Assembly: GCF_000143415.4 (NCBI RefSeq)
Contig: NW_003314274.1
Coordinates: forward strand, 1,688,851 to 1,752,850
Source: Selaginella moellendorffii
Lineage: Eukaryota > Plantae > Lycopodiophyta
Direction: 5' to 3'
Length of the DNA stretch: 64,000 bases
Below are positions 5,498-32,200 of the stretch, piece by piece. The notes below the pieces were generated by a model, which was not told where the DNA came from, made no database searches, and saw nothing but the letters and a program-made list of their open reading frames with translations. How positions within the stretch are numbered: position 1 is the first letter of the stretch; the number at the start of each line of letters is the position of its first letter. The position numbers and the translations under genes were made by a program.

Positions 5498-6911
5498 GGT
5501 AACCTTGCCACCTTGTCGGGAATCCCTACTCTATCCGAATTGCCGCTTCCATGTACAACAAAAGCACCACCACAACCAAGTAGCACTTTGCTCTCGTCTT
5601 AAGCCATCCCCGAGTTCAGTCCAGACGGTCGACCAAAACTGAGAATGGAGCATCTCAATCTGCTGATAACGTTTCTCCTCCAGAGGTTGACGTTGTGTTG
5701 GAGCAGGCCATGCTAGTCTCCCGGGAGCACGACGCTTGCACAAAGAAGGCGTCACATTCTAGCTGCTTGAAGCGTCCGATGGAGTTGGAGATCGAGTGAG
5801 AAGTGACACCGTCCAAGGCTACGTCCCGGACAGGGGCTTCCAGATCTTCATATCCGCATATCCGGAGGCTGCAGAAGTTCTCGCCTACCATGCGCTGGAG
5901 CTCAAGAACTTTTATGCTGGAGCCTTTGTCTGGTTTGACGTATGGTTTCACTAAGTTGCAGACCTGGTTACTGTCGCTTGGTAATCCGATTGGTACTGTC
6001 CTGGACAAAATCGTCGTTGGCATTGTCACGCTTCAAGCAGCATCACAACCATTTGAGAAACTTCTCTCAGCACCTGAAGTAGAGATCGTAGAAAAGTTGA
6101 AGACCGACAGCTTTTCCTTTTCTCTTTTAAGCCTAATCACCATACTCCAGCTATTCAAGCCAAATTACGTTGCTTACAACTTTCAACTCACTATTCATAC
6201 CACTCACCACTCATACTATGCCCACACTGTTTGTAGCTTGCCACTCATCTCGCTCATGCTGCTTACAATAGATAGATCGAAACTCATAGCTTGCATATAG
6301 TCATTGTAAACTTAGCATAAGGGATAATATAGAAGATGACATGTATCAAAAGGAATATTCTCACAAGACATTTAGTTTGCATTTGAGCTGTAGGACCTTT
6401 CAAGTGGTTCATAGCTTCACTAGTAAATTAGCTAAAAAAGAGAGAGAGAAGGTTTTGGATCCACCTAATGTGTGAGATTGTGGATGGCAAGAACACTGGG
6501 AATCTTTGTACAAAGAGTGAATCAAGATTGCCAAATGAAAACACATTCATGCAATGCTTGAGAAAATAGATTAAAAAACACTCATATACTAAAAAAATTT
6601 AGGACTTCATCCCCAGCATCACCTAGAATGCTGCAACACTTAATTGCATTGCAACCAATTAATCAATATGAAAGACCCAGCTTGTCTCTAATATCATTCA
6701 AGGGTATTTCTAATCAGTCACATATGCTGCATAATAATCTTTATAGTCAAGTATGATGGGAAGTTCATCCTGTTCTATAATCATATTAGACATATAAAGA
6801 AATGCATTAGTGTACATGAGTAACAATTATCTTCAATGTTTCTTGTTGAACTCTAACTTTTGATTAGGATCCATACTAATGTTTAAGGAAAAAATATCTA
6901 GAAATAAATAT

Positions 6912-7086
6912 TGTGAGTGCATGGAATATAAAAAGGGAATATAGAAATGTGCATATCAATTAGCCCAAAAACCCTAGCTTATATACATGAGCGAGTGATC
7001 CGGATTAAAACCAATCCGACGGCTACCAAAATCCCATTACGCTAATATTAGTATACGGCATTGTAGCCGTACACTTAGCCTTTACA
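6912..7086 (-). repeat. 3' LTR of element A
   Basis: TGTGAGTG...TTTACA, a direct repeat of 18458-18632, next to the polypurine tract AGAGGAGGGG on the - strand. Confidence 0.93.
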
Positions 7087-7256
7087 TCATCCCCTCCTCT
7101 CGGAATAATGAAAGACCATCAGGGTTCTCTTGTAGATGGGCCAGGATCTGGAGGAACATTAGGAGGAGGCAATGGCAAATCTATACATGGTATTAACCGC
7201 TCTTGATCCCTTTGTATGAAGCGCTGCACATGCACAATCGCTAAAGGATTGGCCTG

Positions 7257-10200
7257 CTAGATGTCATGCCGAACCTCATAAACTTGTGGTCCAACTTGCC
7301 GCAACACCCGATACGGTTCTTTCCACTGTGCAAGGAGCCCCTTAGATAAACCATGTGCCGTAAGATGGGGAAAACAGACTAACACAAAATCATCCACTTT
7401 GTACTCTGTAGGTGGATGATGATGGGAGTTGTAGAGCCATTGTTGTCCCACTTGTATGTGGCCTAAGTGTTCGGCAGACTCTGCTCGGACAAGTGGAAGA
7501 ATGCTTGTCAAATATTGATGACCTAGCCTCTGCAACTCGTGGCAATCGCGAAGGTAAACCCAGCTCCGTTGGTAATATTGGATCATAACCATATAGGAGT
7601 TTATATGGTGAAGCACCAATAGAACTCTACACCCCAGTGACATATGCATACCGAAAAGACGGCAAATAACCATCCCAATCTGAATGCTGAAAGTTCACAT
7701 ACTTCGCAATCATCCCCTTGAACGTCCGAACGAGCCGTTCCACTAGACCGTCTGATTGTGGATGATAAGCACTCGTGAAAGTGTGGCAAATCCCCAACCG
7801 AGACGTCAAAACATGAAATGCCTCAACCATAAATGCGGGACCATTATCTGAAAGAATTCGCTTTGGACAAGAATGCTGGAACACCACTCGATTGAGGAGG
7901 AATTATCCAACAGCAGTTGCAGAGGCGCTAGCAAAAGCACTAACTTCCACCTAACGAGTCAAATAGTTAGAAGCAATAATAATATACTCATTGCCAGCAG
8001 TCGACTGTGGAAAAGGTCTCATAAGATCAAATGCCACCAACTCAAACGGACAGGAAAACTGCAATTGACTCCAACCGTCCTTCCATAGCCCAAGGGGGAG
8101 TATTACGAGCTTGGCACCAAACGCAGCTATGCACATATCGGATAATATCACGTCGCATCTCCGGCCAATAAAAAGACCTGCGTAGCTTCTCAATTACACG
8201 ACAATGTCCCATATGCCCACCTAGAATAGGAGAATCATGGTAAGCATGAAGAAACTGTGGAATAAAGATAGAAGGCACCACCAGTCATAAATGATCATCA
8301 GGATCTGTCCCCACAAAATAAAGAAGGCCATCTTCAAAATGATATTGAGAATGTAAATGCCGGAAAGACAAGTCATCAGCAAGTGATGTAGAATTCTCAA
8401 ACCCATCTCGAAGCCTTCGAATCCAAGGCTCAATCTTTTAAGCCTCGTGAACTTCATCAAACAAAGGTAGATCTTGCTCTGCACCTTGTGGACACTAAAT
8501 GTCGGCCATCGGTACTTGCCAGTACCCAGAAGCAAGATCTAGCTTGGTGAACTAATGACTTCGCCCCAGATGATCCAAGAGATCAGCAGTGTGAGGAAGA
8601 GGGTACACATTCGGGATTGTTACGTCATTTAACGAACGATAGTCGATGCAAAAATGAATACTCCTATCAAGCTTCGTCACAAGATGAGGTTCACATGCCC
8701 AAGGACTCTGCGACTTCCGAATAACACCCTTCTCCAACATCTCCTTGACATTTGCATGTAAAATCTTGATCTCCTGTGGTGACCGACGACAAATAGGAAC
8801 CTTCATTGGACGAGCATCCCCAGTTGGAATCGGATGACGTGTGGCAATCTTGGCTCCAGACGATAGGTCAAAGTCAAAGAGATTAGAATATTCCTTCATA
8901 AGCCGATCAACTACTGCAACACAAAGATCGTCGGAGGGATCGGAAAAGGGAAGAGCAGAACAAGATGGAAACATAGGAGGAAATAGTGGGGAAACAAAAG
9001 TAATGGAAGCAGAGGTAGAAGTAGAGGGATGAAGAGGTATGGAAGTGAGAGGAATGGATGAAACATAAGGAAGTATGAGACAAGGGGGAGAAGCCTCAAA
9101 GTCACACTTGGCATGATTGCGTTGCAACCAATCCATACCAAGAATGAGGTCAAAAGCTTGACTCGGCACCACCCGCAACGACTACAACTCAAGCTCGAGA
9201 TCGCCCACACACACAACCAGGTCTGCCTCATCCCGTGCACATGCATGTATACGGCCGTTGCCATAAAGAATGAAAACTAGTTCCGCCGCACGACGCAAGT
9301 GTAGACGATAATGTGTGGTAACAGGTCGAGCAATAGAAGATAAACTCGAACCTGTATCAACCAACACAGAGAGAATAATAGGAGACTTCTTGTTATAAAG
9401 ACGACCTTGGAAAGTAAACACTGGATGAACTGGTGCCGAGTGAACCCCTTCATGATACTCCCGAAAGAAATATGGAGGGGTCACTGACTTATTCGCGCAA
9501 GATCCCTCTGTTACTCATGCGACTCCTCGTTTCCCGAATGCATCTCAGTGTCCAAACCTTCCATTGCAACAGCACCAACGGGACATTGCTGATGCCAAGG
9601 TCTCCACCAGGAAATGGAGGTCGCCAGTCCGGAAAATGCCGACAACGCCGATAAGTATGACCAACTTCATCACATGCCCAGCAACGAACATCACGGCCAT
9701 GACCATGTCCTCACCCTTGACCTTGGACTCGAGCAGCAACAACATCAACCTCCATTGGAACAAGACCATCACCCACAGGAAGTGGAGCTGAAAGACGTGC
9801 AACGAGAAGTGGAAGAGGTGACGTTTCATAACGTTGTGCCAAGTGAAGAGCATCGTCAAGGGTGGCAGGAGCAAGTGCATGCACAAGTCCGACAAGATCT
9901 TGACGAAGTGCTAGCCACAACATTCCTAGCTTGATCCGCTCCGACATATGTGGCTCCGCACGAAGCAAAAGACTTCGGAAACAAACACCAAATTGCATCA
10001 CTGACTCAGATGGCCCTTGGCGAAAACGATGCAATTGTTGGAAAACATCATCACAGTCATTTGCATGTCCGAAGGCGCGTTTGAAGACATCCGGAAGAAC
10101 ACTCCAATCCCCGCAAGTGGCTGCTCCCAAACCATTGTACCATTGCAATGCCGTCCCTTGGAGACACATGGGAAACTCACGCAAACGTCAAGCATCATCC

Positions 10201-10299
10201 CAAGAATGATATGTGGCAATCACCGTAAAGTGATCGAACCAATGGTACACATCATCCCCAGGATTCCTGCGAATGAACTCCGGCCGAACGATAGGATTG
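7257..10299 (-). pseudogene. Degenerate gag-protease-RT(truncated)-integrase of element A
   Basis: gag (LQGTALQWY..FRQGPSESV), protease (LVDTGSS; FDLILGMDWL), RT N-terminus (EMLEKGVIRKSQSPWA..FCIDYRSLN..YPLP), integrase (HDSPILGGHMG..C-W-CQ; ILSDNGPAF; YHPQSDGLVER; WKEPYRV). Stops and frameshifts throughout. Confidence 0.92.
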
Positions 10300-11445
10300 T
10301 GTAGCGCACGTGGTTTTGACCCTTTATCCTATGGTGATTTACCATAGGATAACACCATGAAGCAGAACCTAAACCCTCTTTGTGCCACGTGATAGATGCC
10401 ACATGTCACATGCCACGTGTCCATGCCACGTGTCCATAGGAACCCGAGGTTCAGGGCCTTGGGCCACTGAACGAAGGAATAATGCCAAACTCCCAAGCAT
10501 GGAGCCAAGGAGTGATGGAACCGGACCACAAAGCAACTCCCGAGCATTTAGCCCAAGGAGCGAAGGGACAGGAGCCCGAAGCGACATGGAACAGTCCTAA
10601 AGCAACCAGCATCCTAATGCCAGGACCAGCACGCAAAACGAAGCCAAACGGAGTCTGGCACTATTTTTGCATACCGGTGGCCTAACGTGAGGATATGGGT
10701 ACTCCACCAGTTAGCATGGAATGGAACTTGGGCTTAGACCCAAGCCGGATGCAGAACAAGGACAGGCACGCAAGCGAGAGCTAGACTATGCCTCAGGTTG
10801 GTCGGCCATGCCCGACCTACCCACTATCCCTACTATACATTTGGAACCCCCCACAGCCCCCCCTCCCTTGAGGAACACACGCTTTGGGCTTTCACCCCAA
10901 GCCTCCCTTAGTATTAGGAGTTAGTCTCTGGGACAAGCTCAAAACTTGCTAAATATGGAATGGCGCTAAAATGCGAATTTGGACACGGGACAAACACCAT
11001 TGTGTTCAAGCCGATCTCTACATTCCGTAAATATGCCAAATGAGCAAATCTAGACACTTTCCATAAATAGCATTTAGGACCGAAATGAGACTAACACAAA
11101 GGGCATGATAGCGAGGGTGTTTGGCAAACACGGTAAGCTATCATCCAACGACATTGAGGGACCAATCTCAATACGCGAGGGTTCTTGTTACTAGCAAGTG
11201 CAAGACAAAACGAGACGGGAACTCCTTACCGGTTAAGTATGCTTAGCTAATAATACGTAGGAATTCCATCCTTATGCTCGTCCGGTCTAAGTACACTCGA
11301 AATGCCCAGTTAACTCCACTAACACAAGAGGGACTGATAAAGGGTCCAGCAATACCGACCTCCTGCCGTCGTGGCAGTAAGGTAAGAGTGTCCGTAAGGA
11401 CTATCCGACAGGTAACTTTCGATACCTGAAGTCACATTCGCGACA
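10300..11445 (-). repeat. 3' LTR of element B
   Basis: Near-identical direct repeat of 16915-18076 with TG..CA ends. Confidence 0.93.
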
Positions 11446-12404
11446 CTCTCCCCCCCTAGGGAAGATTGACGTCCTCGTTGATGCATACTCGAGTCTAGAA
11501 TACTGCCAAGGAAACAACCCCAGAAAAAGTTCACGGTACTCACATTATGTGAGAAATGCACCAACTTACATGAGTTAGGGGGCAACCTCTTTGTCTAACA
11601 CGGATGCGCTACCAGCTCAGACACCTTTCGGCCGTCGCTGACAAGGAAATGACCAATGGAGTCAGCCACCCTTGCTGCTTTGGGTGTCACCCAGCTACAA
11701 AAGTGTGATATGCCCCTGCCCGCAAGGATATAGAGAGAGAAGCCAGAGGCCCCAACCCTCCTGAGCAAAGAAACCAAACCCGTCGATATGGTTTAGATAG
11801 ACTACTGTAAACAGGCAGTTAGAGTTGTTTACATGGTCACGCCCTTTCATGGAATAAGGAACATCGACAAAGAGGCGGGTTATATGAGTGGCAGTAAGGT
11901 AAGAGTGTCCGTAAGGACTATCCGACAGGTAACTTTCGATACCTGAAGTCACATTCGCGACACTCTCCCCCCCTAGGGAAGATCGACGTCCTCGTCGATG
12001 CATACTCGAGTCTAGAATACTGCCAAGGAAACAACTCCAGAAAAAGTTCACAGTACTCACACTATGTGAGAAATGCACCAACTTAAATGAGTTAGGGGGC
12101 AACCTCTTTGTCTAACGCAGATGCGCTACCAGCTCAGACACCTTCCGGCCGTCGCCGACAAGGAAATGACCAATGGAGTCAGCCACCCTTATTGCTCTGG
12201 GTGTCACCCAGCTACAAAAGTGTGATATGCCTTGCCCGCAGGGACATAGAGAGAGAAGCTAGAGGCCCCAACCCTCCTGAGCAAAGAAACCAAACCCATC
12301 GGTAAGGTTTAGATAGACTACTGTAAACAGGTAGTTAGAGTTGTTTACACGGTCACGCCCTTTCAACAGAATAAGGAACATCGACAAAGAGGCGGGTTAT
12401 GTGA
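11371..12404. repeat. ~517-bp tandem duplication spanning the LTR border, PPT and 3' internal region of element B
   Basis: 11371-11887 is repeated at 11888-12404 (GTGGCAGTAAGG...GAGGCGGGTTATxTGA) with few substitutions. Confidence 0.92.
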
Positions 12405-15400
12405 CCAGTTGACAGTAGCTACCCCATGACTAGAGATTTCACCATACACACGAAGTGCCGAAGCCAGTCTGCCCATTACTGGCCCAAATGCAAAGATCAA
12501 TATATTGAAAACATCAAAGTCATAGACAATGATATCTTAGAGATTTAATTATCAGTGAATAAAGCTTAGATTAAAGCACAAAAGTATTCCAAGTAAGTTA
12601 TAATCCGATAAACTAGTATTACAGTATAGGAACCACCAAGATCATTATAATTGGTAAACATAGGAATCACCATCCAACAAAATTCAATAGCAAGTAGATC
12701 ATCAAGGAAACTCAATGATAAAATTGAACTACCGAAAATGGCAGATAGCATGCCAAACAACTCACAAAACACAACTCAAAGAACACAAAGTATCATTGAC
12801 TAACAAGCACAATGCTCGCGAATGTATCACCCGAAAGAAATAACATCCTAATCTATGAGAACTAACTCGAGTAATAATCAACAAAACAAAATGAATGTTG
12901 CAAAGCAAACAAACGCTTGTTCATATTAACCATTGCACTAGCCAATCCGAATAGATCCCAGCCAACAACACTAAGGAACTCAAGTTGCTTAAGCAAGTGT
13001 CAGCAACATCCTACTAATGTCTCAAACCTAAGAGACCAATCCAGAGCAAACCACAAACAACTTGTGGTATTGCAAAAAGCCATAAGCTATCAAAGAGAAC
13101 AACTAACCATCATGAAAGATCATTAATCATCCCATCAATAAAAGATGTGCAGAATCATCGTCTTAGAAGGAATCCACCATCCCGAAGAATAGCAAATCAA
13201 TCTAGATCAACGATAATCAAGCAAAACCTCGTACAAGGATAATCAATTATCCTAGATGATAATCAATCATCACTAATGATTGCTAAATGCAAATACTAAC
13301 TTGTACATCGAAGCTAAAGAGCCAAAAATGCCTTCCCCACAACAACTTTTAACAAATGGAACAATGAGCATAATAAACTCAAAGGACATAAAGTTCGAAG
13401 AAGCCTATAGCCAAGTCTTGCCTAACAATGATCACAAGTCTCGCACGAACTAACTTCAATGCTAAAGAAGAAATCATGGTAGAACCATAATATCCCCTTT
13501 AATACATCCATAAGCTAAACTTCATAATGCGAAAGCTAATGAAGAGCATGTCTGCATCAATCCAAAAGCCAAGCATAATGAAGTTATGCTCAACAAGTGA
13601 TCATCTAATCGATCCTCCATGAATCCATCTATAGCAAGACGTAGCTCATATCGTAACAAGCACAAGGGGAATCATCAATGATCAATATATTCCAATTCAA
13701 ACCCAATAAGGATTTAAACTTTCCAATATTGATCACTAACTCTTTTGCTTGTAGAGTTAGTATAGTCCACGACTGAATCACTTTTCAAGGACAAACTTAA
13801 AGCTCAACCCTTACTAAACAAACTTATCAAGAACACAACTAACTCAACTTGCCACTCAGTTCATTTGAACGTCAACACAGTTGCTAACTAGCAAATGCAT
13901 GAATGCCAACAACACAAAGCTAAAGCCAAATCATCAACACTTTTCATCAAGACTAATGAAACTCAATATCAATCCTAAGGAAAGACATTTCATTTCACTC
14001 AAGTCTCAATATTAACAATATCAATGACAAGGCATCACTTCAATGCCATTAACACCAGGACAAAACTAAAAGAAAGCAAGAGTGAATCACCACTCGGAGC
14101 TTTCCAGCAACCAAGCTAACCAAAGTCGAAGATACTATACTTAGTATCCAAGACCAATCCTTCAGCAAAACTCAGTGACAGATAACATATCATCAAGGAG
14201 TGAATCACCACATCCAAGACTCAATGAAATCCAACACTATAGACCAAACGTAACCAAATGATATCGACAAAGGAATTGATATGCTAACATGGAAAAAACC
14301 ATGCCAGCCTAATGACACGATCCTCCGCAACACCATCTGGTAAAGCAAGCCCATCACCGCTAAATCATCATCGAGCAAAGCAAGTGTCAAAAGTCCTTGA
14401 CGAAGTCTACAAGTAATCACTAGTTGCAAAGCAACTAATAATCACTCCTCAACTTGCCTTCACAAGACCCAAACACCAACTCTTGTCATCAAGTTATATA
14501 CTTGCCTAATATGAACGTGATACCCAGGTACGAGATAAAAGTTCATAGACAAGCACAAACTAAATGACCACTCGAATCCAACTCAACCGCAATAAGCTCA
14601 CTAAAACATTTAGCCACTAGCTCTGAGCATGCCTTTGAAGAGGCTAGCTATACAATCAACACTTAGTCGAAACTAAAGTGAAGACCATAAGATGGACTCA
14701 TATCGGTACACAACCTCCTCATAGACAAAGCTATAGTATGGGTACCAATATCTCAACCTCAAACAACTAAGTTGGACATCACCATCCTTAGCCAAGGCGC
14801 AGGATCACCAAGATTAAGTCAAGATCAGTGAGAGCTCACTACTCTCATAGAGTCTTAACAAAATGCAAGGTGCAACCTGCCACTGAGCATAATGCTACAA
14901 AAGAAAGGCACAAGAGTCACCCTTTTTAGAAAAGTGCAACGGTCACTTTTCTACACCAACTCTAGACTCTATCCAACTCAATTGCATTAACCCCAAAAGT
15001 CAGTATCCTTTTTAGGCTGCATCATACAAACTACCTACTAAGGTTTAGGCTAACCAAAGTCAACTCCAACCCCTTCACTAGTTTGTATTGGCTTATGAAA
15101 ATGGAATGGTTTTCGGCAAAGTGATCAATGGATCAGCCATTGGAAAAGCCTAAGAAAATTTGTGGAAAATTTTCCATTCTAGAGAAAGAATGACTCTCAG
15201 TCCAGGAATGCAAACTTTCAAGACTCAACCAACTTCTGCCTACCTACTACTTCACATAGGTTCACCTCAACACAAATTCTCATGATCCAACAATACGTCT
15301 AAGCATCGAACATTTTTGCCCATCTAATTGATATTCAACACCGACACCCGCAAAGTGCAAAATGAACATCTAAAGCTTGATCACGAAGACCACATCGTCA

Positions 15401-16914
15401 GATATCCACATTGCACTAACACTCTTCTTCAACCACCTTCAAGATCCAATGTGAAGCCAAAACACTAACAAGAAAAATGACATGGAAAATCAAGCTCTAA
15501 GGAAAATTCCTCATCACTCAAATCAACAATGCCACTTCCACTAACACAAGTGCTAGCAATGTCAATGCATCAACCTCACACCTTCTCCATCCAATAATCT
15601 ACTCCAAGTGCTAACGGATCAACAGATGAGTTATAGCAAATGAATGCTACAACCCATTCCCAACACCTTATGGGCAAACCCTCAAAGAAACAAGGTACCA
15701 ACTTAAGCTTAGCATAATGAACCACCATTGAGAATCCAGTCAAAACTACTACAATGCTACTTCATGCAAGTAGACTAGCTTCTCCATCAACCACTTTGGG
15801 GGTTGATCATCGTTTATCCAAGCAACTTTGTAAACACATTGTTTACTATCACATGGATATGATATATAATCACAATGACTTGATCATCAATCGAGCAACA
15901 CTACGAGCATCACCCATGTCACTACTACAAAGGTTTACATAAATATCAAGTGTCAACTCAATTCAATAAAATGTAACATAAATGCCACCACCAACTTTTG
16001 TTCACAACACAGATAAGTTCATACCACTCTTTTTCTGACCAAACTCAAAACTAATCCAACACCAAGCTACTCAAGGAGCAATAGCAAGGTTCCCCGGAAA
16101 AGAATTGAGCATTGCAACCCAAGTCTTCCAATAGCAAGCTTAGACAAAATGGTATAGCACTTTACCACTATCCATCCCACAACTCACCATTGTAAGACCA
16201 CCATCTCCAACATGCATCAAGATAGGGACTCTTGATTGCATGATGTGAATACAAGCAATGAGTTAACACCTCGTTGCGAATCATTTCTCCAAAAGAGAAG
16301 ATGATTTACGTATTTGATCCTCCATCCCCAATGACTCTCTTTTCGGTCTCATCTTTGACCAAACCTCAAGCTTGCTTTCGCACTGCCTTCAGTTCAATCG
16401 AAGAAAAGTTTATGAGAGAGCATGGCCATGATTACTTGAACCAATAGATTAATCCCTATAGTCTTGATTGATCCACTTATAATCATGCCTAGGAAGGATC
16501 CACTAGTGCCGTGCTAAACAGCTACGGACCAGCCTATTTGCCACTCATAGCAAACTCAGGGAAAGTTTACTTTCACCCACGGTACATGGAACAACTCATG
16601 GAACCACCGATAGGCTAACATTAATCCTGCCAACTCAAAGTGTAACCTCAAGTTGCTAATGTGCCTCACTCACGAGCCCAAGCACAAACTCGTGCAACCG
16701 GAACAACTCAAATCCATCTTATGAGCCCAAGAGCAAGCTCACATAATTACGGTACAAGAAAGTAACCAAATCCATACCCAAGGAACGATTGCGAAGTCTT
16801 TGCACCAAAACGTGTACCCACTCGGATCATCGTTTTCATCTCTGTGTATGCAACAAGACTAGTTGCCCAATCTCATTGAATAGTACTCGTTGAGACTCAT
16901 CCTCTGATACCAAA

Positions 16915-18076
16915 TGTAGCGCACGTGGTTTTGACCCTTTATCCTATGGTGATTTACCATAGGATAACACTACGAAGCGGAACCTAAACCCTCTTTGTGC
17001 CATGTGACAGATGCCACATGTCATATGCCACTTGTCTATGCCACGTGTCCATAGGAACCCGAGGTTCAGGGCCTTGGGCCACTGAACGAAGGAATAGTGC
17101 CAAACTCCCAAGCATGGAGCCAAGGAGTGATGGAACCGGACCACGGAGCAACTCCCGAGCATTTAGCCCAAGGAGCGAAGGGACAGGAGCCCGAAGTGAC
17201 TTGGAACAGTCTTAGAGCAACTAGCATCCTAATGCCAGGACCAGCACACAAAACGGAGCCAAACGGAGTCTGGCACTATTTCGGCATACCGGTGGCCTAA
17301 CGTGAAGATATGGGTACTCCACTAGTTAGCATGGAATGGAACTTGGGCTTAGACCCAAGCCGGACGCAGAACAAGGACAGGCACGCAAGCGAGAGCTAGA
17401 CTATGCCTTAGGTTGGTCGGCCATGCCCGACCTACCCACTAACCCTACTATACATTTGGAACCCCCCACAGCCCCCCCCCCCCCCCCCCCCCCCCCCGTG
17501 AGGAACACACGCTTTGAGCTTTCACCACAAGCCTCCCTTAGTATCAGGAGTTAGTCTCTGGGACAAGCTCAAAACTTACTAAATATGGAATGGCGCTAAA
17601 ATGCGAATTTGGACATGGGACGAACACCATTGTGTTCAAGCCGATCTCTACATTCCGTAGATATGCCAAATGAGCAAATCTAGACACTTTCCATAAATAG
17701 CATTTAGGACCGAAATGAGACTAACACAAAGGGCATGATAGCGAGGGTGTTTGGCAAACACGGTAAACTATCATCCAGCGACATTGAGGGACCAATCTCA
17801 ATACGCGAGGGTTCTTATCACTAGCAAGTGCAAGACAAAACGAGACGGAAACTCCTTACCGGGCTAAATATGCTTAGCTAATAACACGTAGGGATTCCGT
17901 CCTTATGCTCGTCCGGTCTAAGTACACTCGAAATGCCCAGTTAACTCCACTAACACAAGAGGGACTGATAAAGGGTCCAGTAATACCGACCTCCTGCTGT
18001 CGTGGCAGTAAGGTAAGAGTGTCCATAAGGACTGGCCGACAGGTAACTTTCGAAACCTGAAGTTACATTCACGACA
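16915..18076 (-). repeat. 5' LTR of element B
   Basis: Direct repeat of 10300-11445 with an expanded poly-C tract at ~17472-17497, and the PBS adjacent. Confidence 0.93.
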
Positions 18077-18457
18077 GATTGGCACCAAGAGCAGGAGGAG
18101 TTGTACCATATGCTGTGAACGCCGCCATCAACTGAGTTTGGTTGTTCAATTGCAAGTGCATAGTATCAAGCAATTGTACCAACTACTGCTCCAGAGTCAA
18201 AAGAGGAGATTGTTGATCTGCCATGGAGACGAATGAAAAAGAAAGAGCAAAAGAAGAGAAATGACAAAAAGCTAGAAGGAAATGGTAGATCTAAACAATG
18301 CAAAAAGCTAGATCTAAACCAAAATCCTGAAAGGAAAGAACAAAAGAAAAAAAATGGAAAAAGCTAGATCTAGACAATGCAAAAGCTAGATCTAAACTGA
18401 AATCCCAAATCCAAACACTCCTCAGGGACAATCAAAGGTGCCCCTCACCTCCACCAA

Positions 18458-18632
18458 TGTGAGTGTATAGAATATAGAAAGGGAATACAGAAATGTGTAT
18501 ATCAATTAGCCCAAAAACATTATCTTAAATATAGGAGCGAGTGGTCCGGATTGAAACCAATCCGACGGTTACCAAAAGCCCACTACGCTAATATTAGTAC
18601 ACGGCATTGTAGCCGTACACTTGGCCCTTACA
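18458..18632 (-). repeat. 5' LTR of element A
   Basis: Direct repeat of 6912-7086, followed on the - strand by TGGTGGAGGTGAGGGG (PBS). Confidence 0.93.
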
Positions 18633-19961
18633 ATATTAAATTAAATTCCCAAATAAATGCAAGATTGGACTGGAAACCAATTAAGCTGTTCTAATACAAA
18701 TCTTAATAATTGTTTACCATTTTTAGTTTTCTTAAGAAATTAAAATATGTAGATATTCTAGGATATTCTACTATCTAACAGTTGTTATTCATTTAGATTA
18801 GTCTTGTATTTATAATTTATGAATATGTTTATAACTTATAAACTTTCTTAAACACTCCCTAATATATTCTAGTTTATTTTACCATCTAATGATTGATACA
18901 CAATAATGTTAATCTTGTGTTTATAAATTATGAACATTATTTATAATTATAAACTTCCATTTGATAAATTAAATTAATAATCCAAAACCTTGATTCCACT
19001 ATACTTCTAAACTTTGACAAATCCCCAGATTTTTGTGCAATAACCTCTATCACTTGGAATAGTGGGAGCAATGAAGCTATACAAATGATAATATTTAGTT
19101 TTGGAGGAAGGGTATCTTTGGTTTGGGGAAAGATATAGTCAATATGTTTGATTTTGGCACTTATTCAGTCCTAACTTTCATGACTATGGCACAATAATGG
19201 AAACTCTTCAAGAATTGTTCAATGGTGAGAATCATCTGGAGTTCAAATAATTGTAGCTCACATCCAAATACTCCAAACATGTTATATTGACAAATATAGC
19301 TGCCCAATCCAATTTTCAAAGATACAAAACATGGTGGATGGAAAAGGTTATTCCACATAAAGCTTAACAAAACTATGCAGCTAAGTATTTTAATAGTACT
19401 TAACTTGGTCACTCCTCTTGTTAATAGATTTTGGATCATCCTTAGAATGACACTAGCTATTATGAAGATCTAATTATTCCCAGCATACTTGCTATTCAAT
19501 TCCTCTAAGCACCATTTTGCTAAAATCTCAATCAATCTCCTCTTGGATCTATGTGTCCATTGATCATTGGCCCTTCCTTTTACACGGCTTTGTTATGTCC
19601 TTGGAAGACAGTCTGAACAACATTTGCGCCTTGACCATAAGCGTGCAAGACAGAAAATGGAGATTTATAATTACAAACGAATTAGAAAAAGTTACATCTC
19701 AATGCTTGAATGTTCTAGGTATATTTACTATGATTCAACATTATCATAGCTTGGTCCGAGGAGTGTTTTGATTCTTTGAGTCCTTTCAGTGCTATTTGTA
19801 ATGCTTTGGCTTTTATGGCTGCTACTCTAGCATCTGGCTGGAAAAAAAACCTTCATCCATCAATGCTATGAACTTTAACGATCTCAGTCCACCTCAAACA
19901 GCTTTAGGAAAAGTGGCTACAAAGATGCAGGAACCATAATCCATTTTTCTTCAATTGACTC

Positions 19962-25083: not shown

Positions 25084-25296
25084 GAGAGCTCTGTGATCGC
25101 TGTGAAGAACAATGAAGAACACAAACAAACTTTGCTCATTGTTTAGCGTTTGTAAACACAAATAATTTGACTAGCGTTGACTAGGGAACACCAGAGTTAT
25201 GGAGAAAGTTATGCGAATCTCTTCCTCATGCCAGCGTCGCTTAATAGCCAGCATCTTTAGCCGACAAAATTGAAGCCCGCCAGCAACAACAATCTA

Positions 25297-25703
25297 CGCT
25301 GCTCGTCCAAGGCGCCAGTAGCATCCATCTCCTGCACTCGCAAGAGGGTGACCGGCCAGGCTCAAGTCGGTTTGCCAGCAAGCGCCATACGGTCTCTGCG
25401 AGAGAACAAGGACGGCATGGCAGATCAATCCCGATAAGATCTCCTGCCGAATCCGAGCGGCGGCTGCCTCGCTGCCATGGGGTTGGATCCCAGAGCTCTG
25501 GAGCTCGACGTGAACTCTACAAGCTGCTGCTCTACGAGGCTGGAGGACACTTGCAAGTTCCACAGGACACGAAGAAGGAAGCTGGGATGTTTGCGACGAT
25601 GATCGTCCAGCTCCCCACAGACCGGGGGAGCTCTCGGGGTTCGCCAGGGGCTGGAGCGCTACACTTTGATTTCTCGCAAGGCAGCTCCAGCAAGTATTTC
25701 TCT
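25297..25703 (+). pseudogene. Deleted and frameshifted copy of the 2OG-Fe(II) oxygenase 5' region
   Basis: Near-collinear nucleotide match to ~27843-28310 (CAAGCGCCATACGGTCTC; CTACAAGCTGCTGCTCTACGAGGCTGGAGGACACTT; GATTTCTCGCAAGGCAGCTCCAGCAAGTA) with multiple deletions. Confidence 0.88.
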
Positions 25704-26000
25704 TTAACCATGGAAGTTTGCTCACGTCAATGTTGGTGCCATGGAGAGAGTTGTTCCCCAGCTTCAGCAGCTCCAACTTTGCGCAGTTCTCAAGCAGTGG
25801 CCGTGAAATTTGTCCAATCAACTTTTGTTTCTTTCCATTCCCAGGGTTTGATTTGACATGTCAACTAGAGTGTAGCGTGCTAGTTCAATTGGAATTTCCC
25901 CTTGGATTGAATTATCTGAAATATCCAGTTTTTGGAGCGCTGTGAAGACGAGGAGAATAGTTCCGAGTGCCTTGGTAGTCAATGCCTGGATCAAAGAGAG
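25700..26000 (-). pseudogene. Leucine-rich-repeat (plant extracellular LRR) fragment
   Basis: LIGQISRPLLENCAKLELLKLGNNSLHGTNIDVSKLPWL fits LxxLxLxxNxLxG. The surrounding frame is broken. Confidence 0.5.
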
Positions 26001-27189
26001 ATCAACCAGTGCATGGATGATGCTTTCAAACCTTTGCTGAGGGGAGGAAGTTTGACCGTATTAAATATCGCTTTTTATACCTATGTTATCTAGCTGTTTC
26101 CGATAGCAACTCCAGAGAGCTGAGCGCTCAGACCATAACATGGAGCACGGGGGATGGCAAGTACTTCACGGCATAACTCTCCAGCAAGCCCACAAACGAG
26201 TGCTCTATCCAAGGTGTGCATCCCATTCAGCTTGGATGGGGACAGCTTCTTGAGTTGCTGGTTTTCTAAAAGTCTAACTTCTGCGTGCATGTGCACCTGG
26301 AAGGCTGAAAGGCTCAGACCATTCTCATTCCTCTTTGGTAAATTTCTTCCATGCGTACAACTCCAGCAAGAAAAAACTGGAATCACAAGAAAAACAACTA
26401 AAATCTCAATGTTACACTTCCCATGGTACACGAACTGTTGATCATCCCGCGTGCTTAAAGCTGCCATGGCGATCGAGGGAGCGCCAAGCATTGGAAAGAT
26501 TTGCACTCGATTGGAGAGATAGAGGTGCGGCTAGGCTGACGGCCGAGAAGGTCCATGCATCGCTCCACTTTGTGGAGGAATCAGCAATGCCGAATTGTAA
26601 GACACGCAAATTGACCGATCAGGGATTAGGAGGAGGAGACAAGACGAACGAGATGAAAAGGGGCTGGGGAGGGATTAGAGGAACGAGAAGAACAGGGCTG
26701 CGGTGAAGGGCTGGAAGCTGTTGAAGCAGAGGTTGATGGCGTTAAGAGAGCACGTCGAACATCGTCAAAAGATACGAGTGGAGGGTGAAACGAAAACTCG
26801 TCAATATTACGCACATTCTAGACGAAGCTCAAGTTCCCATTCACTTCCAGGACCAACTACTCCACGAGCTTCACGGTGGTGTCGATGAGTCGTACTTTCC
26901 TATTGCATCAAACCAGCCGGAGGGATGGAAAAGAAAGATTGAAGGCCAGCCACTTCCCGACACGCACTACCGCATGAAGTCCTTGCTTTCCAAGCTTGGA
27001 ATGAGTAGCCCTGATCGCTGGAGGATTTGCCTCGATCCGGCTCACCCTCCTCAGACCGATTTTGTAGCTATATGAAAGTTGACATTGCGAAATGAGACCT
27101 CGATCTCCAACGCTGCAATGCTAAAGCCAGTCTCAATTGGAGTGTGTACAAACAAAATCCCACACCTGGAAGAAGTAAAACGAAACATT

Positions 27190-27665: not shown

Positions 27666-27746
27666 GTTGAAATCTTCGGCCACCCTTGCTCGCATTTTGG
27701 GACTGCATTTTTTTGAAACAAAGATCTTTTAGGGTTTAAGAGAGTT

Positions 27747-30633
27747 ATGAATTCGGAGGAGCTCCTCAAGGCGCTGTGGTGTGATCGAGAAGTCTTTGCG
27801 ACTGGAGGGAAGATCGATGTGAATGTCTTCCCCATGTCAGCGTCGCTGCTCGTGGAAGGCGCCGGTAGCATCCATCTCCCGCTCTCGCAAGAGGGTCTGG
27901 CCAGGCTCAAGTCAGTTTGCCAGCAAGCGCCATACGGTCTCGGCGAGAGGACTCTCGTCGACACCGACGTGAGGAAAGCATGGCAGGTCAATCCAGATAA
28001 GATCTCCTGCCCCGAGAATCCGAGCTTCTTCTCGTCCGTGGTTCATGGCTTGGCGGCTGCTGGGCTCGCCGCCATGGGCCTGGATCCCAGAGCGCTGGAG
28101 CTCGACGTGAAGCTCTACAAGCTGCTGCTCTACGAGGCTGGAGGACACTTCAAGTTCCACAGGGACACGGAGAAGGAAGCTGGGATGTTTGCGACGATGA
28201 TCGTCCAGCTCCCCACAGCGTCCGGGCACGCCGGAGGAGCTCTCGGGGTTCGCCAGGGGCTGGAGCGCTACTGCTTTGATTTCTCGCAAGGCAGCTCCAG
28301 CAAGTACTTCTCGACCATCTTCTTTTGCGACTGCGAGCACCAGCTTGAGGAAGTGACCGGCGGATCGAGGCTATCCCTGGTTTTTAGCCTGGTGAGGAAC
28401 AACGTGGAGTTCATAGCCGCCGAGAACGTCCCCTCTTTTGTGTCCTCGATGCCTCGAGTGAAAGAGCTTCTTCGGGAATGGGTCGAGAAAGGTGGCGGCG
28501 GTGTGGCGCAGAGAGCAAACTCGCGGAGGTCAAGGCAACTCGCCACGGTAGCGAGATCAAACGCTCCCCGGATACAACTCGCCACGGTAAGCATCGATCT
28601 CTACTTTCTATCCATTTCTAAGTCTTCGTCGTGGCAATAGCGTGCGACAAGGAGGACTCAAGAGGAAGAAGATGATAGCTCCGATGACGATGACTATGCC
28701 CCGGTATACAGCCGCAACCGCAGCGAGTATAAGAGGAAGCTCTTGGCGATCCCGCTGGCTCACAAGTACTCCAAGACGAGCCTCTCGTTTGCCGGGCTCA
28801 AGGGCCAGGACCGCGTTGTAGCGGCCATGGTGAGAGCCTGCGAGTTTCTGGATGTCCATCTTTGCATGCTCACCAAGCACAAGACCGTGACGGAGGACGT
28901 GTCGATCGAGTACGGTATCGACAATAGGCCAGCCAAGTTTCAAAGGTGGGAGATTGATGTCCGGCACCAAGTTCTTCGCTGCGCGCTGAAGAAGCTGCCC
29001 CGGGATATGAACAAGGACAAGGACGAGTTTAACGAGAGAGATCTCTTCGACTTTCTCGAGGACGAGTTCCGCGGGACGGGGATGATGGCTGGAAACGAAG
29101 GTGGCACGAATCAGTACTTCTACCACGTCGCGGTTCTGGTGGTGTGGCCGAGAGAGACGAGGATGCAAACGATTTGCTGCTCGCCGATACACACAGACTG
29201 GCTGCTGGACTGGATCGAGGAAGAAGCTTGCGGATCGGAGGAAAGCAAGAGGAGAAACTTGGAGCAAGCTGTGGATGCTTTCCACAGCTTGCCGGAGAAG
29301 TTTGAGGCTTCTCCGGGTTGAAGACTCGGATGCTGGAAGTTTGTTGCCCGGCTGCTCGATGCGTGTGTGATGAACGGTGCTCGCGATGCCGCGTTCTTGA
29401 TCTTGAGGACGTGGGGAACGAACCTGACGAGCTTCGACGAGTTTGCGACGGCGGTGAAGGCTTACGGCTGGGAGGCATGCAAAGGGACTGTGGAAACGGT
29501 GATGAACGCCGTAAAGGAGCACAAAGAGCCAGTGAAGCGTCAGTGGTGGAGCAGAGAAGATGTGAAAGCCAGCGATCCTCCGGAGTGGTATGGCGCAGTG
29601 ATGGCTTGCGGAGGTCTGGCCTTGCGACTGGACGCGTGTGGATGCCGGGACGGGGCGATCGCTGCAGCCAAGATGTTTTGCGGCGAGATCTCCTCTGAGT
29701 TACCCGTGACTGTGAAGTACAATGAGGAGAAGCATTTAGAGAATGGGATCGCGATGCTGCTCGAGTTTTGCATTGACGCAAGGCTTGGCGACGAGGTCTC
29801 CCACATTCTGGGACGAGTTCCCTGGGAGAAGCTTAGCAGCCGGGCTCTTGCCAAGCTGAGGCATCACTTTCCGGAGCGCAGAGAGGAGGTGGACGAGTTT
29901 TGGACGTGGAGGAAGGAATGCTTAGAGGATCTCTCTGGTTCCTGGAGCAAAGAAAAGTATGTGGAAGACGTGGTGAAGTTTGTGATGGAGCTGGAGTCCC
30001 TGGGCGATCATGACACAGCGGTGGCGCTTGCATCCGAGCTTCTCTTCGCGGATTTTGCCAAGGTGACGAGCTTGGAAAATCACGAGGTGGTGGCGCTGCT
30101 GCTGCTCGACAAGGCCGAGCTCATACCCAGGGCTCCATACATGAATCGCTCCACAGTGATCAAGACAATGCGAGGAGCTGCGAGCTTGGTTGGCTTGAAG
30201 GAGAAAGATGGATTGAGGACGGTTTTTGGAGATCTGTGCAAGGCAGAGCTCCCGGAGGTGGCTGACAGGGCAGAGATGATTTCTTGGGTAGGGGATAGAC
30301 ATCGAGATCCCAAGCTCGCGTTGGCTTGGAAGGACCAGAAGGAGTTTTTCGAGACGTTGTTTTGGCTGGGAGAGGAGGAGGTGCTCGGAGCTATGGTGGA
30401 GTGTGTGAGCAAGAGGAGCAACCTGGTGAAGTGGATGCTGGACAAGGATGAGGGTCTTGTGGAAGAAGCCATGAGATATGGAGGGAATGTGAGGGATGCG
30501 ATGAGAAAGGTGGTGGATTCGAGGATGGAGTATCTCTCGAGGGAGCCGAGCTTTGGGGAAGTGGAGAGGAACTATTTACCGCCGCCACCGTTGAAGGTGA
30601 TGAAGATTTGTGGGTTTGTGGATGCCCGGCAGG
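27747..30633 (+). CDS. Large microbial-type 2OG-Fe(II) oxygenase (2OG-FeII_Oxy_3-like) with long helical C-terminus; one in-frame TGA; 3' end lost in gap
   Basis: QAPYGLGERTLVDTDVRKAWQ, KLYKLLLYEAGGHFKFHRDTEK (HxD), DCEHQLEEVTGGSRLSL (H; R), LAHKYSKTSLSFAGLKGQD, GNEGG..YHVAVLVVWPR. ORFs 27747, 28743 and 29367 share one frame. A 54-nt phase-0 intron at 28587-28640 removes the first stop, but TGA at 29319-29321 remains. Confidence 0.82.
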
Positions 30634-30843
30634 NNNNNNNNNNNNNNNNNNNNNNNNNNNNNNNNNNNNNNNNNNNNNNNNNNNNNNNNNNNNNNNNNNN
30701 NNNNNNNNNNNNNNNNNNNNNNNNNNNNNNNNNNNNNNNNNNNNNNNNNNNNNNNNNNNNNNNNNNNNNNNNNNNNNNNNNNNNNNNNNNNNNNNNNNNN
30801 NNNNNNNNNNNNNNNNNNNNNNNNNNNNNNNNNNNNNNNNNNN

Positions 30844-31700
30844 TTCCCTCCATATCTCATGGCTTCTTCCACAAGACCCTCGTCCTTGTCCAGCATCTTC
30901 TTCACCAAGTTACTCTTCTTGCTCACACACTCTACCATAGCTCCGAGCACCTCCGCTCCTAGCCAAAACAAACTCCTGGTCCTTCCAAGTCAACGCGAGG
31001 TCGCGTTGCATATATGCATCTCGTTGTATATCTCCTCCCCGAGAACTCATGTCCGAACTGTCAGACATGTCCGGGAGCTCTGCCTTGCAGAGATCTCGAA
31101 AAGCCTTCCTCAATCTATCCTTCTCCTTCTAGCCAACCAAGCTCGCAGCTCCTCGCATCGTCTTGATTACTTCGGAGCATGGACCCCTGGGTATGAGCTC
31201 GGTCTTGTCGAGCAGCAGCAGCGCCACCACCTCGTGATTTTCCAAGCTCTTAACCTTGGCACAGAAGCTCGGATGCAAGCGCCACCGTTATGCCAGGGAC
31301 TCCAGCTCCATCACAAACTCCACCACGTCTTCCACATACTTCTCTTTGTCACTGCCATACAAGAGATCCTCCTCCTCATTGTCGTCCGAGACATTCTGAT
31401 CGTTCTACAGTGATGACCGTTTAAGAAATGCAAAGCATTCGTTCCTCTTCCAAAACTTGTCTACCTCCTAGCTGCGCTCCGGAAAGTGATGCCTCAGCTT
31501 GGCAAAAGCCCGGCCGCTAAGCTTCTCCCAGGGAACTCTTCCCAGGATGTGGGAGACCTCGTCGCCAAGCTTTGTGTCGAGGCAAAACTCGAGCAGCATC
31601 GAGATCCCATTCCCTCGATAGTCCCCTTCCTTCCACTTCGTTACTGGTAGCTTCGAGGACATAACATCTTGGCCCCTTCCCGGCATCCACACGCGCATTC
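30844..31700 (-). pseudogene. Inverted partial copies of the oxygenase C-terminal region
   Basis: Reverse-strand matches to ~29950-30490 (30844-31360) and ~29630-29880 (31468-31700), e.g. NGISMLLEFCLDTKLGDEVSHILGRVPWEKLS. Confidence 0.85.
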
Positions 31701-31732
31701 GTTCCTCCTCCCTCAAACGACAGTTATAACTC

Positions 31733-32200
31733 AGTATGTGGAAGACGTGGTGGACTTGGTGATGGAGCTGGGGTCCCTGGGCCAGCACGACACAAAGGTG
31801 GTGCTTGCGTCCGAGCTTCTCTTCGCAGATTTTGGCAAGATGGAGAAGTTGCAAGATCACGAGGTGGTGGCGCTGCTGCTGCTCGACAAGAGGGCGGAGA
31901 TGAGTTCTTGGGAGTAGATATACAACGAGATGTATATATGCAAAGCGACCTCGAGTGGGATTGGAAGAGACAAATTTCGAGACGTTGTTTTGGCTGGGAG
32001 AGGAGGAGGTGGTCGAAGATATGGTGGAGCGTGTGAGGAAGAGGAGTAACATGGTGGACAGGATGCTAGACAAGGAAGAGGGCCTTGTGGAAGAAGCCAT
32101 GAGATATGGAGGGAATGTGAGGGATGCAATGAGAAAGGTGGTGGATTCGAGGATCTCGAGGGAGGAACTATTTGCTGCCACCTTCAAAGGTGACGAAGGT
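31733..32200 (+). pseudogene. Direct-orientation partial copy of the oxygenase C-terminal region
   Basis: YVEDVVDLVMELGSLG..HEVVALLLLDK and FETLFWLGEEEV..EEAMRYGGNVRDAMRKVVDSR, with an internal deletion, a stop and a frameshift. Confidence 0.85.

Follow-up and report, generated by a model that had tools for sequence, protein, structure and literature searches.

The window analysed here is a 64,000-nt stretch of the Selaginella moellendorffii genome, and all genomic positions are counted from its first letter, position 1. Its protein matches identify the same species. It carries a gene of an iron(II)/2-oxoglutarate (2OG) oxygenase family whose members bear only hypothetical or generic 2OG-oxygenase annotations; a literature search on the long-form family found nothing. 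The window gene is a broken member of this family. An ATG at 27747 opens a single frame that continues to 30633 in the translation of the window, and a one-frame translation of 27747-30650 yields ~960 codons, interrupted by two stops. The first is a TAG (28638-28640) within a 54-nt GT...AG segment at 28587-28640, and the second is a TGA at 29319-29321, codon 507. Position 30633 is not the end of the gene, as the frame there enters a 210-N assembly gap (30634-30843). We analysed the frame as three coding blocks, 27747-28586 (280 amino acids, aa), 28641-29318 (226 aa) and 29322-30632 (437 aa). An earlier, sequence-only reading of this DNA had described one frame of over 900 codons with an iron-binding HxD...H triad and a 2OG-binding Arg. 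The frame at 27747-30633 and these residues stand, but the in-frame TGA had been missed, and the frame runs into the gap.

A second contig, GL377631.1 (hereafter L002), is collinear with the window at 94-99% identity, flanks included, and thus represents the second haplotype; the S. moellendorffii assembly holds both haplotypes. At 29319-29321 the L002 sequence reads TGG instead of the TGA of the window, and the window allele is therefore a nonsense allele. The TGA recurs in an independent contig of 248 nt, taken from another run, which is identical to the window over 29251-29498. Readthrough or selenocysteine at this TGA was considered and rejected, because the other allele simply reads TGG; plants are not known to have the selenocysteine machinery. 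L002 has lesions of its own. It is without the start ATG, which falls in a 91-nt deletion (window 27681-27771), and an 8-nt deletion (window 28175-28182) shifts its frame directly after HRDTEK, within the catalytic domain; an additional 12-nt deletion is in frame. Both alleles are thus broken by different lesions, nonsense in the window and start loss plus frameshift in L002. Neither has an uninterrupted full-length coding sequence, and disabling mutations of the kind that define a pseudogene are present on both. P0022 (SELMODRAFT_424217, 933 aa), the Joint Genome Institute (JGI) model of the L002 allele, crosses the 8-nt frameshift artificially.

L002 also bridges the assembly gap. Its open reading frame (ORF) stops 39 codons past the last coding base of the window, and the window frame plus these codons gives an ancestral full-length protein of ~980 residues. 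The TGA change separates the helical domain of this protein from its catalytic module. About 13 of the 51 allele differences cluster within ~120 nt at 30066-30182, in the C-terminal region; this cluster may reflect gene conversion from the nearby partial duplicates listed in Table 1.

The sequence-only reading had also called the 54-nt segment a GT-AG intron. The segment is present and occurs once in the window, and the same junction is used by P0022. No read spans 28587-28640 in three sampled RNA-seq runs of the species (~9.2 million reads each, ~12% of each run), and the junction is without RNA support. The paralogs P0023 and P0028 have no introns, unlike the copy in the window. A 15-nt direct repeat, CAACTCGCCACGGTA, lies at 28536-28550 and 28575-28589, 39 nt apart, and each copy encodes QLATV. 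Its second copy provides the GT of the putative intron donor, and the first is a twin cryptic donor.

Table 1. Positions in the window of the oxygenase gene, its parts and its partial duplicates
Feature	Position	Strand	Evidence and remarks
Decayed partial duplicate of the exon-1 (catalytic) region	25293..25724	+	tblastn 41% identity, E 2e-22; blastn 87-89% over ~250 nt between copies
Exon 1: N-terminal strands and double-stranded beta-helix catalytic domain	27747..28586	+	Translation; Pfam PF13640 at 26.4 bits; invariant columns; 280 codons
Putative intron, 54 nt, GT-AG, holding an in-frame TAG	28587..28640	+	Sequence; same junction in JGI model P0022
Second coding block: acidic linker, then family-specific alpha/beta subdomain	28641..29318	+	226 codons; LxHxY, LKGxD and GN.G...Y...WP motifs
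Premature stop TGA, codon 507; TGG (Trp) in the other haplotype	29319..29321	+	Translation; allele comparison; independent contig over 29251-29498
C-terminal helical TPR/PPR-like solenoid region	29322..30633	+	437 open codons 3' of the nonsense codon, ended by the gap
Assembly gap, 210 N, concealing the last 39 codons and stop codon	30634..30843		Missing end given by L002:15135-15254
Inverted partial duplicate of the C-terminal region (its residues 123-388)	30846..31662	-	tblastn 60-89% identity; blastn 80-94% identity
Two further direct fragments of the C-terminal region	31732..32173	+	tblastn 75-78% identity

The catalytic residues are all encoded in the first block, with His138 and Asp140 (H138-R-D140) at 28158-28166, the distal His198 at 28338-28340 and Arg208 at 28368-28370. 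H138, D140 and H198, the HxD...H iron triad, occupy invariant or near-invariant columns of the family, and R208, the predicted 2OG-binding Arg, is invariant across alignments of 12 and of 98 sequences. The Pfam model 2OG-FeII_Oxy_3 (PF13640) matches residues 125-212 of exon 1 just below its gathering score (26.4 against 27 bits), and ten full-length orthologs and paralogs score 21.7-39.9 bits, seven of them above the cut-off. Pfam returned nothing for blocks 2 and 3 and only PF13640 for the ten full-length relatives, and NCBIfam gave nothing useful on the three coding blocks. Pfam coverage of this widespread three-domain 2OG oxygenase family is limited to the catalytic core.

The fold was tested on the paralog P0028, to which exon 1 is 57% identical, as a stand-in for the window protein. 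The model of the P0028 N-module has a predicted local distance difference test score (pLDDT) of 92.7 and a predicted template modelling score (pTM) of 0.90. It contains a double-stranded beta-helix, and residues 25-285 align with jelly rolls of the prolyl-hydroxylase type. The matches are Pseudomonas PPHD (PDB 4iw3), an EF-Tu prolyl hydroxylase (Z 14.4 over 182 residues, root-mean-square deviation 4.7), PiuC (Z 14.2), human PHD2/EGLN1 (Z 13.6), algal P4H (Z 13.1), OGFOD1 (Z 12.0) and Tpa1 (Z 11.8). Profile searches of PDB sequences gave no significant match (E 0.11 to 3dkq). The iron and 2OG ligands of the window copy are intact, and the fold is PHD-like.

PPHD and PHD2 have in common with the window family the HxD...H triad and the Arg, which in PHD2 binds 2-oxoglutarate. 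Nevertheless, sequence identity is only 12-15%, the catalytic part of both enzymes covers ~200-240 residues, and neither has the LxHxY/LKGxD/GN.G subdomain or the 330-550-residue helical tail of the window family. OGFOD1 and yeast Tpa1, which are uS12 prolyl 3-hydroxylases, and the PiuC/YbiX types (9ghl, 3dkq) stand at the same Pfam level, with catalytic-fold Z of 11.8-14.2. OGFOD1 and Tpa1 are likewise two-domain proteins, with a second, beta-rich domain of their own after the catalytic one. However, OGFOD1, Tpa1 and PiuC align to P0028 residues 28-288 only, and Ofd1_CTDD is not detected by Pfam in the window family.

The region that follows the catalytic domain is conserved within the family. 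The LxHxY, LKGxD and GN.G...Y blocks at 28641-29318 recur across 98 family members, in which the His and Tyr of LxHxY and the Lys of LKGxD are nearly invariant and the Asp is invariant; the Gly and Tyr of GN.G...Y also belong to the conserved residues. This second subdomain (approximately residues 240-400) combines a long helix with a sheet made up of long hairpins, at high confidence in the P0028 model. A search with that model found no structural match for it, and no Pfam, NCBIfam or protein-atlas feature match was found.

The third part is helical. An AlphaFold model of the C-terminal region of the L002 allele is all helical, with 27 helices (pLDDT 79.9, pTM 0.71), and Foldseek against the PDB and an Atlas search returned only generic TPR, PPR and designed-repeat matches, at template modelling (TM) scores of 0.45 or less. 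When 1.84 billion representatives were searched by phmmer with the C-terminal block, five proteins were the only matches, all from S. moellendorffii. Profiles reach further. The Selaginella C-terminal profile matches liverwort, moss and fern C-termini (E 2e-12 to 4e-5), the reciprocal search also matches, and the bryophyte C-terminal profile reaches a protein of the fungus Tilletia as well. By hhalign, the Selaginella C-terminal set aligns with the bryophyte/alga set at 94.9% and the bryophyte/alga set with the bacterial set at 88%; the Selaginella set aligned directly against the bacterial set is not significant. Because of these profile and hhalign links to bryophyte, fern and fungal C-termini, the C-terminal half is the oxygenase family's own fast-evolving tail, homologous to that of other long-form members. 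We considered an orphan C-terminal domain and rejected it, as the single-sequence search misleads and profiles link the region to bryophyte, fern and one fungal C-terminus.

The full protein of ~980 residues therefore has three parts: a PHD/P4H-type jelly roll, a conserved alpha/beta subdomain and a fast-evolving TPR-like solenoid. The intact triad and 2OG-binding Arg, the three motif blocks and the long helical C-terminal region had all been recognised in the sequence-only reading, as had the distance from the plant DOXC, P4H and AlkB enzymes; the relatives do include many bacterial and fungal proteins. Its statement that the C-terminal ~420 aa match no family holds for Pfam but not for profile comparison, by which they are homologous to bryophyte and fern C-termini. 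By analogy with the fold matches, intact family members are probably protein hydroxylases, with proline as the likeliest target residue, and the helical solenoid may serve to recruit their substrate.

A profile of the N-terminal module collects 105 proteins, spanning mosses, a liverwort, a fern, green algae, fungi and bacteria. The land-plant matches are Ceratodon, Physcomitrium (XP_024401051), the liverwort Calypogeia and the fern Adiantum, the green-alga matches are Symbiochloris and Ostreobium, and the fungal matches are a chytrid, Tilletia, Pseudozyma, Botryobasidium and Tulasnella. In bacteria, a motif scan of genomes found the family in at least 565 species across many phyla, with a typical protein of ~780 residues. 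No conserved neighbour of the bacterial homolog was found at two annotated loci or at 80 loci with ORF clustering, and operons thus give no clue to function. No seed-plant homologs were found, a result of one word-filtered search and not of genome scans.

Our careful IQ-TREE analysis (63 rows, 420 columns, unrooted) agrees with a quick tree of 100 rows. Land plants form a clade (100/99) that branches like the species tree, with bryophytes (95/85) set against fern plus Selaginella (98/88). All 12 Selaginella rows group together (100/100), and block 1 of the window copy is sister to P0023/25/27 (100/98). Homologs occur in Ceratodon, Physcomitrium, Calypogeia and Adiantum, and Selaginella is sister to the fern and does not fall inside a microbial clade. 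Land plants inherited the family vertically, and its absence from seed plants fits loss there.

The moss orthologs, Physcomitrium patens LOC112294617 (XP_024401051, P0130) and Ceratodon purpureus KC19_11G044100 (P0046), belong to this land-plant clade, and their N-modules are 39-43% identical to that of P0028. Their C-terminal regions are homologous by profile but unrecognisable by single-sequence search. Both are low-copy, annotated and apparently intact, unlike the window copy. Physcomitrium, in which gene knock-outs are routine, is a possible study system for the family. In C. purpureus (CM026432.1), P0046 is an intronless ortholog lying between a TIR-domain gene and a TIR-NB-ARC gene, an immune-receptor neighbourhood.

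The family has expanded in S. moellendorffii, where it occupies at least a dozen loci, and some of these copies are intact and lack introns. With the natural L002 ORF of 692 codons as query, long Selaginella paralogs of 838-1058 aa are found, among which P0023 (SELMODRAFT_403360, 1029 aa) and P0028 (SELMODRAFT_426844, 899 aa) are intact intronless ORFs. Identity of the window copy to P0023 is 75%, 60% and 41% for the three successive blocks. P0023, P0028 and P0022 have the same three-part architecture as the window copy and form one Selaginella clade with it (100/100). P0023 and P0028 are intact single ORFs, whereas the window copy contains a putative intron and a nonsense codon, and the L002 allele is frameshifted and lacks its start codon. 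Short natural forms of 400-500 aa also exist (P0001, P0005, P0006, P0010, P0012 and P0014). Two 1342-aa JGI models, P0031 and P0036 (SELMODRAFT_437525 and SELMODRAFT_439806), join a GT8 glycosyltransferase to an Fe2OG part, and RefSeq retains only a 448-aa GT8 protein. At the P0001 locus (L001), a second, rearranged family copy lies at L001 positions 16336-18420, 6 kb downstream of P0001, with an RVT_2 gene between the copies; in it a weak C-terminal-like piece precedes catalytic-like pieces.

Expression of the window copy is close to nil in the data sampled. Each of the three RNA-seq runs gave one partly fitting read. In ~20 further contig sets from the species hardly any of the sampled words occurred, although one of these sets contained the 248-nt piece. 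This near-absence of reads suggests, but does not prove, that the copy is untranscribed. No annotated protein of the window's haplotype came up in any protein search made, and none of the ten Selaginella family clusters examined contains a RefSeq protein. The alleles differ by 16 synonymous and 29 non-synonymous changes, for a ratio of non-synonymous to synonymous rates (dN/dS) of 0.52 overall; on these 45 changes the ratio is 0.21 for block 1 and ~1.05 and 0.64 for the later blocks. In the comparison with P0023 the three blocks give 0.20, 0.23 and 0.36, which argues that purifying selection acted through most of the history of this copy and that the lesions are recent and allele-specific.

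Most likely, the window copy has recently become a pseudogene; at best, it is a truncated allele. In this account, gene decay would have proceeded by a Trp-to-stop change at codon 507 in the window allele and by start loss plus a catalytic-domain frameshift in the other haplotype, so that the gene is caught during loss, each haplotype of a single plant bearing its own disabling lesions. The sequence-only reading had taken it for a working gene of defence or secondary metabolism; for this copy that does not hold, with both alleles disabled and almost no RNA reads. For the locus as a whole, we regard it as probable that it is a decaying copy in an old, vertically inherited, uncharacterised Fe(II)/2OG oxygenase family whose intact members are probably protein hydroxylases.

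Several points weigh against this account, and most of them favour an alternative that we consider unlikely, namely that the window allele is a working gene for a 506-residue enzyme without the solenoid, expressed only in tissues or conditions outside those sampled. The allele still encodes the entire 506-residue catalytic module, with every catalytic residue intact, which would be potentially active if expressed, and this module is as long as the short forms that occur naturally, namely P0001 and proteins of 400-500 aa from fungi and metagenomes. Between the alleles dN/dS stays under 1 overall and is 0.21 in exon 1, though the counts are small. The 248-nt contig covering 29251-29498 comes from a run guessed to be RNA, and the near-zero RNA depth was measured on ~12% of each run and without a neighbouring-gene positive control. 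On the other side stand the near-absence of reads from all three RNA-seq runs, the destroyed catalytic domain of the other allele, the lack of an annotated protein for the window haplotype in the searches and of a RefSeq protein in the family clusters examined, and the dependence of the frame on the putative 54-nt intron. A separate reservation concerns function, as the predicted substrate and reaction derive from fold similarity only.

The origin of the plant genes is a distinct question, on which the decaying, vertically inherited copy that we favour leaves room for an older event. An ancient transfer from bacteria to the ancestor of land or green plants, after which the gene was passed on vertically and disappeared from seed plants, is possible, given that the deep branches are weak and the tree is unrooted, but we rate it as improbable. 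The family is broad in bacteria and patchy in eukaryotes, the two green algae do not group, and fungi appear in three places of the tree. P0023, P0028, Ceratodon P0046 and Physcomitrium P0130 are intronless or have one intron, which is compatible with an ancient bacterial origin without proving it. However, the grouping of land plants with their sister, Ostreobium and a metagenome protein, is supported at just 77/39, and no donor clade is identifiable. The tree also has most eukaryote sequences on the same side, a pattern that would fit an old eukaryotic gene lost many times equally well.

That the family is cargo of a transposable element, which would account for its many fragmentary copies, is very unlikely. 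More than 20 Selaginella gene models belong to the family, many of them fragmentary or chimeric, partial duplicates flank the window gene on both sides, and the RVT_2 gene lies near P0001. Nevertheless, the intact paralogs P0023 and P0028 sit amid ordinary single genes, with no transposase or terminal repeats at those loci, the moss orthologs look like normal genes, and the flanks of the two haplotypes are collinear; transposon cargo was rejected from the contexts of these two paralogs.

Least credible is the idea that the Selaginella lineage recently acquired the gene by horizontal transfer, with a fungus or bacterium as donor, and we attach practically no weight to it: a first single-sequence search gave only Selaginella, metagenomic and basidiomycete proteins and the intact paralogs lack introns, but moss, liverwort, fern and green-alga homologs (39-43% identity) are nearer than bacterial ones (~30%), transfer into Selaginella is refuted because the single land-plant clade (100/99) follows the species tree, and on both haplotypes the gene lies amid ordinary plant genes, encoding a kinase, Ras, Tim17 and an aquaporin and, in L002, also a nitrilase-type hydrolase. 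Horizontal acquisition had been the central claim of the sequence-only reading, which had set against it a vertically inherited streptophyte clade with seed plants included; a land-plant clade of this kind exists, with no seed-plant ortholog in it. Loss in seed plants, which the same reading had offered in brackets, is the better explanation, as the land-plant clade is vertical and no seed-plant ortholog was seen. The horizontal-transfer candidate is thereby removed, its microbial look having arisen from comparison with seed plants only.

Beyond the decaying copy itself, a bolder proposal may be entertained, although we hold it to be doubtful. The family would be an unrecognised class of PHD-like protein hydroxylases, with a TPR-like recruiting domain of its own and a second subdomain bearing a possible extra functional site. 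It would have entered the green lineage early from bacteria and been lost in the ancestor of seed plants; algae, bryophytes, lycophytes and ferns would have retained it, with strong diversification in Selaginella.

The partial duplicates on either side of the gene (Table 1) agree with the local turnover noted in the sequence-only reading. Between the upstream fragment and the gene lies a 96-codon ORF (26785-27075). In the other haplotype, the JGI model P0015 fuses the counterpart of this ORF to a fragment of the oxygenase catalytic domain, and P0015 is probably a chimeric gene model. Further upstream, an 11.7-kb stretch at 6909-18653 is present in the window and missing from L002. Direct repeats resembling long terminal repeats, 94-96% identical and 6.6 kb apart, lie inside it at 10300-11445 and 16915-18076, and 175-nt direct repeats (6912-7086 and 18458-18632, 89% identical) bound it. 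This stretch is probably a haplotype-specific retroelement insertion.

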